From contig NIVC01001731.1 in assembly GCA_002269645.1 (NCBI GenBank), positions 62,001 to 126,000 on the forward strand: a stretch of DNA of 64,000 nt, read 5' to 3'. This DNA is from Macrostomum lignano. Lineage: Eukaryota. Each line of letters starts with the position of its first letter. Position 1 is the first letter of the stretch. The position numbers and the translations under genes were made by a program. This document shows, piece by piece, positions 55,440 through 58,400 of this stretch. The notes beneath the pieces are model-generated. The model did no database searches. It was given only the letters and a program-made list of their open reading frames with translations, and was not told where the DNA came from.

Positions 55440-55470
55440 ATAAAAGTTTGTCTTTTTTATTCTGCAGCAG
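55440..55470 (+). promoter_or_regulatory. Strong 3' splice acceptor (tandem CAGCAG) at the 5' end of NAA25; candidate trans-splice site
   Basis: TTTGTCTTTTTTATTCTGCAG|CAG|AAC with a U-rich stretch upstream. I found no matching upstream ATG-bearing donor. Confidence 0.5.
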
Positions 55471-58400
55471 AACAACAAGAGCGACCCGCGCGAGCGTCGC
55501 CTCAAGGCGATCTACGACGCTTTGGACGCCGGCAACAACAAGAAGGCCATCCAGGAGGCTGAGAAAGTTCTGCGCAAAGAGGCTGGCGATTCACTATGCG
55601 CGAAAGCGTTGCGCGCACTCGCACTATTGCGCTCCGGCCGCCTTGATGAGGCCACTGCCGCCGCTTCGGAGGTGGGCTGCGGCTTTGCTTGTCTAGTCCT
55701 TTGTTCTTCTGCTTCCGCCCTCTCGCTGACTTCCGCCCGCTCTCTGACTTCCACCCGCTCTCTCTCTCTCTCTCTCTCTCTCTCTCTCTCTCTCTCTCTC
55801 TCTCTCTCTCTCTCTCTGACTTCCTCTCTGACTTCCGCCCGCTCTCTGACTTCCGCCCGCTCTCTGACTTCCGCCCGCTCTCTGACTTCCGCCCGCTCTC
55901 TGACTTCCGCCCGCTCTCTGACTTCCGCCCGCTCTCTGACTTCCGCCCGCTCTCTCTCTCTCTCTCTCTCTCTCTGACTTCCTCCCTCTCTGACTTCCGC
56001 CCTCTCTCTCTCTCTCTTTCTCTCTCTCTCTCTCTCTCTCTCTTTCTCTCTCTCTCTCTCTCTCTCTCTCTCTCTCTCTCTCTCTCTCTCTCTCTCTCTC
56101 TCTCTCTCTCTGACTTCCTCCCTCTCTGACTTCCGCCCTCTCTGACTTCCGCCCTCTCTGACTTCCGCCCTCTTTGCCGCTCCAATTCCACACACTTCCC
56201 ATCAGCTCTAGTATGGATATATCAATGCTAATTTTATTCTCACTCTACCAGGTGGAGCGGGTGGACACCAGCGAGGAGTCGGTGCTGCAGGCCATGACCT
56301 ATTTCTACAAGGAGAGCCATCGGCTCGATCGCATAGCGGCAATGTACGAACGGGCCGTCCAGCAGCAGCCGAAGAGCGAGGACCTGCTCACCAGCCTGTT
56401 CATGGCCCACGTCAGAGTCCTGGACCACAAGAAGCAGCAGCTGACCGCCGCCAAGCTGCACCGGCTGGCGCCTAGCAAGAATCCCTACTATTTTTGGTCC
56501 GTGATGAGCGTGCTCATGCAGGCCACTGAGTGCGGCGGCGAGCTGGCCAGCAAAATGCTGCTGCCGCTGGCCGCCAAGATGGCCGAGGCCTTCCGAGACC
56601 GGATGAACGCCGAGGCTGAGGTCTGCTCACTCCTCAGTCACTCTCCAGTCACTCCCTAGTCACTCTCCAGTCACTCAGTCACTCTCCAGTCACTCAGTCA
56701 CAGTCTCCAGTTACTCAGTCACAGTCTCCAGTCACTCCCTAGTCACTCACCAGTCCCTCCCTATAGTGGCTCCCCAGTCACTCACCAGTCCCTCCCTATA
56801 GTGGCTCCCCAGTCACTCACCAGTCACTCCTTAGTCACTCTCCAGTCACTCCCTAGTCACTCTCCAGTCACTACCTAGTTACTCTCCAGTCACTCCTTAG
56901 TCACTCTCCAGTCACTCCCTAGTCACTTACCAGTCACTCCCTATAGTGGCTCCCCAGTCACTCACCAGTCCCTCCCTATAGTGGCTCCCCAGTCACTCAC
57001 CAGTCACTCCTTAGTCACTCTCCAGTCACTCCCTAGTCACTCTCCAGTCACTACCTAGTTACTCTCCAGTCACTCCTTAGTCACTCTCCAGTCACTCCCT
57101 AGTCACTTACCAGTCACTCCCAAGTCAGTCACCAGTCACTCCCCAGTGGTTCTCGAGTCACTCCCAGTCACTCCCTAGTGACTCCCCAGTCACTCACCCG
57201 TCACTCCCAGTCAATCACCAGGCACTCCCAATCACTCACCAGTCACTTTTCAGTCGCTATCTAATCAGTTTTTAGTCACCCTACACTAGACTCACTATTC
57301 AAAAAGCATCCCTTAGTCACCCTCATCACTGCACTCCATAATCTCTCTCCCGTCACTCCCCACCCATTCTTCTATAGTCGCTAATAAACCACGCACTATC
57401 CTACCTTCTCACTTCCCACCCGAACTCTTTTAAAACTTATTTTCCATTAAGACCCGAACTTTCAAGCCCGAACAGAGTTAGTTGAGAATTGATCCCCCCT
57501 CTAATTATAGCGAATATCAATTATCCCCTTTCACCTTTCTTATCCGAAAAGCATCCAGGCCATCTCTACATTTGCAGGCAATGCGATTGTGAACCAGCAT
57601 AAATGCATAACTGATTGACATTGTTCCTGTGCATCTCTCTCTCTTTAATTACTTTCTAATTCCCTCGCAGAAACCATAAATTTTGTGCTTTCATTATTTC
57701 TCTCATTTTTTCTGCCAATTAGTGCTTAAAATTGTTTTTAATTAATAATGTCTAATTTGATTTCACTCTCTCCCCTTACCCACAGGTGCAGCTGTACTTG
57801 ATGGTGCTAGAAATGCAGGAACGATTTGAAGACTGTTTGGCCACCCTGGACGGTCCTTTGAGCTCATTGTTGAGTCCGCAGTCTACTGAGATGACCCGTC
57901 AGCAACGAATGGGCTACCTGGAGAAGCTGGGCCGCAAACAGGAACTCGCCGATGCTCGTTGGGAAGATTTAACCACTGAGCCGAACGATTGGGCCAGGTA
58001 AGGCTTAGCTTGGGATAAGAATCCCTACTTCCGGTTATAGTTTAGTTAGGCAGAAGCTTCCACTTCCGGTTCCAGTTTACTAGGCAGAAGCTTCCACTTC
58101 CGGTTCTAGTTTAGTTAGGCAGAAGCTTCCACTTCCGGTTCTAGTTTAGTTAGGCAGAAGCTTCCACTTCCGGTTCCAGTTTACTAGGCAGAAGCTTCCA
58201 CTTCCGGTTCTAGTTTAGTTAGGCAGAAGCTTCCACTTCCGGTTCTAGTTTAGTTAGGCAGAAGCTTCCACTTCCGGTTCCAGTTTACTAGGCAGAAGCT
58301 TCCACTTCCGGTTCTAGTTTAGTTAGGCAGAAGCTTCCACTTCCGGTTATAGTTTAGTTAGGCAGAAGCTTCCAATTCCGGTTATAGTTTAGTTAGGCAG

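Follow-up and report, generated by a model that had tools for sequence, protein, structure and literature searches.

An NAA25 gene of Macrostomum lignano without its own start codon: probable donation of the initiator AUG by the trans-spliced leader

NAA25 at the end of the window

The stretch of 64,000 nucleotides analyzed here (the window) is NIVC01001731.1:62001-126000 of the Macrostomum lignano assembly Mlig_3_7 (GCA_002269645.1). Downstream of a gene for a DDX18-like helicase, it carries the gene NAA25, whose first coding exon lacks an ATG codon. The results described below indicate that NAA25 very probably lacks a genomic start codon and takes its initiator AUG from the trans-spliced leader. 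The coordinates of the relevant features are collected in Table 1.

A seven-exon model of NAA25 was built, in which every exon boundary is AG/GT. Without its first Gln, the spliced model (790 aa) corresponds to the first 789 residues of P0264, the protein annotated at this locus (L002). Window positions 53000-57000 are 100% identical to L002:3530-7530. Over its N-terminal 262 residues, the model matches human NAA25 (PDB 6vp9 chain B) with E=9.5e-54, from human residue 7. The 790-aa model aligned with full-length metazoan NAA25s across most of the query, mostly with 31-36% identity, and the Pfam domain NatB_MDM20 (PF09797) is present in the closest proteins and on P0144 and P0264. By homology, the gene is identified as NAA25, which encodes the auxiliary subunit of the NatB N-terminal acetyltransferase.

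When a 261-aa NAA25 N-terminus and a 163-aa alpha-catenin exon were used as queries, short or partial homologs were obtained and no M. lignano entry was among them. The 790-aa model recovered the NAA25 proteins of M. lignano itself, which form a near-identical cluster. No transcript-derived M. lignano protein was present among the matches of these protein searches, and neither NAA25 nor Mlig015240 was found in the papers and supplements of Macrostomum studies.

The first two introns of NAA25 are rich in repeats. Intron 1 (window 55708-56173) consists largely of arrays of an 18-bp unit and of (CT)n, and intron 2 (window 56627-57247) largely of micro- and minisatellite arrays with 11/22/180-bp units. 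In both introns, the pyrimidine-rich strand is the sense strand.

Table 1. Features of the NAA25 locus and annotated starts of the three paralogous copies. Positions are those of the window unless a contig is named; slashes mark splice boundaries, here and in the text.
Feature	Position	Strand	Remarks
NAA25 exon 1	55468-55671	+	aligned to human NAA25 from residue 7
NAA25 exon 2	56252-56620	+	spliced model identical to P0264
NAA25 exon 3	57786-57997	+	spliced model identical to P0264
NAA25 exon 4	58826-59249	+	spliced model identical to P0264
NAA25 exon 5	61245-61763	+	spliced model identical to P0264
NAA25 exon 6	62753-63277	+	spliced model identical to P0264
NAA25 exon 7, truncated by window end	63884-64000	+	annotated coding sequence continues to equivalent of window 64504
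In-frame stop TAA	55441-55443	+	27 nt upstream of exon 1; zero ATG between TAA and 55468
Polypyrimidine tract and acceptor 1 (GTCTTTTTTATTCTGCAG)	55450-55467	+	CTGCAG at 55462-67 matches [T/C]TNCAG
CAG (Gln) codon between the tandem acceptors	55468-55470	+	second acceptor AG at 55469-70
Third in-frame AG (AACAAG/AGC)	55478-55479	+	12 nt downstream of first acceptor
Sites 1, 2 and 3 in the record	NIVC01001731.1:117468, 117471, 117480	+	window coordinate + 62000
TAA stop of DDX18-like helicase	53301-53303	+	open reading frame 52893-53303; annotated end L002:3833 = window 53303
Cryptic GT donor GCG/GTCAGA	53283-53284	+	within last exon of the helicase; used by older UniProt fusions
Tandem array, 26-bp unit (AGAATCGCCCCTGACCAAAACTGACA), ~33 copies	53733-54633	.	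detected by TRF; intergenic region or outron
L001	contig NIVC01000092.1		start CAG/CAGAAC, equivalent of 55468; P0144 'QNNKSDP'
L002 (window copy)	contig NIVC01001731.1		start CAGCAG/AAC, window 55471 = L002:6001; P0264 'NNKSDP'
L003	contig NIVC01001340.1		start AACAAG/AGC (AG at L003:5999-6000); P0265 'SDPRERRL'

The first coding exon lacks an ATG codon

Translation of 55468-55671 (+) gives 68 codons without Met (QNNKSDPRERRLKAIYD...AASE; full exon reading, QNNKSDPRERRLKAIYDALDAGNNKKAIQEAEKVLRKEAGDSLCAKALRALALLRSGRLDEATAAASE). The exon ends at 55671 with the donor GAG/GTGGGC. It opens at TTTTTTATTCTGCAG/CAG/AAC, and the sequence of 55450-55479 reads GTCTTTTTTATTCTGCAG/CAG/AACAACAAG. Because the TAA at 55441-55443 closes the frame, the open reading frame (ORF) cannot reach into the genomic sequence upstream. 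The genome offers no in-frame ATG before the conserved N-terminus, and none until codon 84.

A preliminary description of this DNA had proposed that exon 1 has no ATG and begins at a tandem acceptor with both sites in phase 0. Both statements were confirmed, the first by the translation and the upstream TAA, the second by the sequence around the acceptors. A third in-frame AG had been missed; the AGs at 55466-67, 55469-70 and 55478-79 are all in phase 0.

It had also been stated that orthologs carry about 8 residues before the DP motif, so that little beyond the Met is missing. Indeed, human NAA25 has 8 residues before DP. In 111 full-length orthologs, ERRL is usually preceded by 9-14 residues (mode 11, with a few longer). 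A leader Met followed by the residues encoded from site 1 (M+QNNKSDPR) gives 9 residues before ERRL, which is within this range.

The ATG might be carried by an unannotated cis-spliced mini-exon in the 2.2-kb spacer between the helicase and NAA25, joined to 55468 or 55471. The same acceptor could also work in cis-splicing, and with up to ~5 extra N-terminal residues in orthologs, a few additional codons would be tolerable. However, only six ATG...GT phase-0 exon candidates are present in 53304-55467. The donors of these exons (GTCACC, GTGTGG, GTTCCC and GTTATC) all deviate from the M. lignano donor consensus GT[G/A]AG (PMC8629364). Five of the six candidates fall in the stretch aligned with the paralogs described below (from 54600), and all five are destroyed there, either by a change of ATG to ATA or because the donor has lost its G. 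Both paralogs read ATA at 54793, and both have a deletion of the donor G on which the 55027, 55051 and 55060 candidates depend. The remaining candidate, at 53579, lies outside the paralog alignment and is excluded solely by its weak GTCACC donor. Moreover, no public gene model contains such a mini-exon. We therefore consider this origin of the start codon very improbable. The earlier observation that 53300-55440 holds no convincing ATG-plus-donor exon stands, with the six weak-donor candidates and the loss of five of them in the paralogs.

Annotated starts in three paralogous loci

Two other loci of the Mlig_3_7 assembly, L001 and L003, are paralogous or homeologous copies in a partly duplicated genome. 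At all three loci, the annotated NAA25 coding sequence (CDS) is 5'-partial and Met-less, and begins directly after an AG, in phase 0. The L003 protein, P0265, is PAA69222.1, 'hypothetical protein BOX15_Mlig015240g1, partial [Macrostomum lignano]'.

In the Mlig_3_7 annotation, which used the RNA-seq data SRP082513 and SRR2682326, the leader was trimmed off reads containing the spliced leader (SL), and the reads were then mapped (PMC5730564). The TBONE pipeline split transcriptional units at SL-read peaks, and ORFs were subsequently defined by TransDecoder (PMC5730564). A 5'-partial TransDecoder ORF requires a transcript start at most 2 nt from the first codon. A transcript with its first nucleotide directly after an acceptor has the form expected of a trimmed trans-spliced mRNA. 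The annotated starts at AG provide strong but indirect support for trans-splicing at those sites. Judged by these CDS starts, the 5' end of the mature mRNA coincides with a 3' splice acceptor. They also lend support to the proposal, made in the preliminary description, that trans-splicing would build proteins beginning with M-Q-N or M-N-N.

Over its 204 nt, exon 1 of the window copy shows no difference from L003 and one from L001. In contrast, the three-way alignment of ~870 nt upstream contains many substitutions and indels. All three paralogs share the tract GTCTTTTTTATTCTGCAGCAGAACAACAAGAGC without a single change.

Other public gene models of NAA25 go wrong at its 5' end in three ways, all of which arise because the genomic start codon is missing. 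P0147 (UniProt A0A1I8G1X3, Macrostomum lignano) and P0269 join the C-terminus of the helicase to the residues of NAA25 exon 1 (/QNNKSDP). P0145 begins at an out-of-frame ATG in exon 1, near 55646. Finally, P0266-P0268 run through the polypyrimidine tract and open with 'FILQQNNK'.

The first type of model, if correct, would make NAA25 part of a read-through fusion with the upstream helicase, through a cis-splice from 53282/53283 to 55468 as in A0A1I8G1X3. The in-frame junction is used by both of these older UniRef models, and the helicase is the same-strand neighbor of NAA25 at each of the three paralogous loci. Nevertheless, the fusion donor GTCAGA is off the GT[G/A]AG consensus, and in the newer, evidence-based annotation the helicase stops at its TAA and NAA25 has a separate start at all three loci. 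No such fusion was seen in 116 orthologs (0/116), and gene finders that meet no start codon typically fuse the gene to the nearest ATG upstream. A genuine fusion is thus hardly to be expected.

The spliced leader as a source of the AUG

M. lignano possesses a single 35-nt SL, CGGTCTCTTACTGCGAAGACTCAATTTATTGCATG, with ATG as its 3' end (...TTGCATG; PMC8629364). According to this published sequence, the SL RNA exon of the organism has AUG at its 3' end, as the preliminary description had expected of a flatworm. The final ATG of the Macrostomum leader has been noted as the likely translation start (PMC10468722). In the passages of PMC12582326 and PMC5832876 that cite Cheng et al. 2006 (J Biol Chem), the flatworm SLs reported are said to all end in AUG, and this AUG is said to be usable as initiator.

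The share of trans-spliced genes in M. lignano is ~30% (PMC8629364), or roughly 30-39%, and conserved genes are enriched among them (PMC8629364). Among the motifs at trans-splice acceptors, [T/C]TNCAG ranks first (PMC8629364). In NAA25, this motif is matched by the CTGCAG of acceptor 1 and by none of the six internal cis acceptors (0/6). A search of the window allowing 3 mismatches did not find the SL sequence, so the SL RNA gene is located outside it. No RNA family was detected in 53300-55700 by an Rfam scan (E<=1).

In the mechanism we propose, the NAA25 pre-mRNA would receive the SL by trans-splicing at several in-frame acceptors clustered where its coding sequence begins. Since the last three nucleotides of the 35-nt leader are AUG and its acceptors are in phase 0, codon 1 would be the leader AUG. 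The predicted products are M-QNNKSDPRERRL from site 1 (55468), M-NNKSDP from site 2 (55471) and possibly M-SDP from site 3 (55480). The 5' untranslated region (UTR) would be 32 nt long and wholly leader-derived. At the expected junctions, the leader 3' end TTATTGCATG would be joined to CAGAACAAC, AACAACAAG or AGCGACCCG, so that TTATTGCATG would be followed by CAGAACAACAAG at site 1, AACAACAAGAGC at site 2 and AGCGACCCGCGC at site 3.

In modelled leader-plus-exons mRNAs, the leader AUG precedes all others and, whichever of the three sites is used, is in frame (MQNNK..., MNNK..., MSDP...). Two out-of-frame AUGs come next, opening ORFs of 16 and 23 codons, and codon 84 is the earliest internal AUG in frame. 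The leader AUG could conceivably be left unused, with translation starting at this internal AUG or at a near-cognate codon, for example a CTG that lies in frame at 55462, if the transcript is unspliced. The U at position -3 of the SL AUG and the UniRef models P0266-P0268, which read through the acceptor, would fit such a start. However, the codon 84 AUG is preceded by the two out-of-frame AUGs, and its use would skip 83 residues that are conserved with human NAA25 and near-invariant between paralogs. As for the CTG, it lies within the polypyrimidine tract and is removed by splicing. An internal or near-cognate start is, in our opinion, very improbable.

Several points weigh against initiation from the leader AUG. 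The locus coordinates are CDS extents and not mRNA ends; the reported end of the helicase 'gene', for instance, is the end of its stop codon. The trans-splice sites are themselves deduced from annotated CDS starts. Since exon 1 is near-identical among paralogs, short reads would multi-map, and the differing annotated starts may partly reflect a choice of the pipeline rather than three real sites. Finally, the U at -3 of the SL AUG does not make a strong initiation context by vertebrate standards. With these points in mind, we infer that SL reads truly join at acceptors 1-3 and that ribosomes start at the leader AUG.

The usage of the NAGNAG pair is affected by the same difficulty. The preliminary description had suggested that the two acceptors give two N-termini. 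In keeping with this, the annotation places the start of L001 at site 1 and that of the window copy at site 2, but the assignment of reads to either copy is ambiguous, exon 1 being near-identical in both.

Predicted N-termini and NatB

N-termini of the MQ- and MN- kinds are NatB-type (PMC8553619). NAA25 made from site 1 (MQ-) or site 2 (MN-) would thus be NatB-type, and NAA25 made from site 3 (MS-) would be NatA-type. The NatB type is a one-in-five class, which is unremarkable on its own. In the 111 full-length orthologs, the N-terminus is MA in 98, MS in 5, MV in 3 and MQ in 2. With MA, MS or MV in 106/111, a NatB-type N-terminus is not conserved in NAA25. The ancestral metazoan N-terminus of NAA25 is MA-, and a self-substrate state would be derived, following capture of the leader AUG.

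The idea, put forward in the preliminary description, that this NatB subunit is a substrate of its own complex follows only from the NatB type of the predicted N-termini and finds no comparative support. The NatB-type start is best seen as a by-product of the codon that follows the acceptor; self-acetylation is possible, and nothing suggests that it is important. A more elaborate scheme would have alternative acceptors vary the residue at position 2, with NAA25 acetylated by its own NatB complex and acceptor choice tuning the feedback. We regard this as very improbable.

Upstream region and neighboring genes

Four conserved genes follow each other on the + strand of the window: alpha-catenin (24.6-34k), a Na+/H+ exchanger (37.7-41.4k), the DDX18-like helicase (44.5-53.3k) and NAA25 (55.5-64k). 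The distance from the helicase stop to the NAA25 acceptor is 2164 nt. Between the helicase stop and the annotated NAA25 start, the spacers of the three paralogous loci measure 2.2, 3.3 and 5.4 kb.

In M. lignano, operons have been defined by a same-strand upstream gene at a distance of at most 1 kb after repeat adjustment (PMC8629364). After subtraction of the 901-nt tandem array, the spacer in the window is ~1260 nt, counted from the stop codon and not from the end of the helicase 3'UTR, which comes near the published limit of 1 kb (PMC8629364). The L003 copy is named g1, that is, the first gene of its transcriptional unit. The conclusion that the leader donates the NAA25 start codon is independent of operon membership.

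Alpha-catenin, the Na+/H+ exchanger and the helicase each have their own ATG at the 5' end, which argues neither for nor against the NAA25 finding. A YTNCAG acceptor is present just upstream of the ATG in two of these genes. In alpha-catenin (window 24772-24808), it reads TTGCAG/CTCTAA..., with the ATG at 24806. In the helicase (window 44516-44555), it reads TTCCAG/AGCCAGCCCTTGTGTTAA..., with the ATG at 44553. If trans-splicing took place there, the leader AUG would open an upstream ORF of 2 codons (alpha-catenin) or 6 codons (helicase) before the genomic start.

Two fragments of putative mobile elements lie upstream of alpha-catenin, both judged by eye from their translations. One, an ORF fragment at 13754-14816 (+), resembles a mariner-type transposase, the other, at 17823-20437 (-), a retrotransposon pol (reverse transcriptase / RNase H region).

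Discussion

NAA25 appears to be a conserved housekeeping gene that no longer has a start codon of its own and whose translation has come to depend on trans-splicing. In view of Cheng et al. 2006, this would not surprise a specialist. Indeed, the gene is a new, individually undescribed example of a well-known flatworm mechanism, known since 2006, and a leader-donated start is probably common in M. lignano. The main value of the finding is for the curation of M. lignano protein sets, as it explains why the three NCBI NAA25 proteins are flagged partial or are Met-less. The missing-ATG problem probably affects many trans-spliced genes of this species, and adding the leader ATG when translating trans-spliced transcripts would repair such gene models.

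The spacer and acceptor of NAA25 resemble those of the trans-spliced genes and operons already described in M. lignano (Wudarski 2017, PMC5730564; Ustyantsev and Berezikov 2021, PMC8629364). They have in common the conserved gene class, the YTNCAG acceptor, a same-strand upstream gene and a repeat-filled spacer. NAA25 may be called a candidate operon member, with a repeat-adjusted spacer (~1260 nt) near the 1 kb threshold and an L003 copy named g1.

The acceptors also recall NAGNAG sites, in which two AGs stand 3 nt apart in phase 0 and the choice between them adds or drops one residue, here Gln. In NAA25, however, the acceptors would act in trans, making the variable residue that of position 2, and a third AG is present.

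A further likeness is with slORFs (slORFfinder, PMC9851317), which, like the NAA25 ORF, exist only on the trans-spliced mRNA and are missed or mis-modelled by annotation. slORFfinder was applied to nematodes, ascidians and Euglena and relied on ribosome footprints, whereas the NAA25 ORF encodes a canonical conserved protein and is not an alternative ORF.

The closest parallel is the leader AUG of schistosomes, which supplies Met1 of the recipient's product; there, as in NAA25, the SL exon ends in AUG, an in-frame acceptor stands at the start of the coding sequence and the recipient has no genomic start codon. The schistosome work concerns parasitic flatworms. Here, the organism is a free-living macrostomid and the gene is NAA25, undescribed individually in this respect, for which initiation from the SL AUG is predicted from the sequence.

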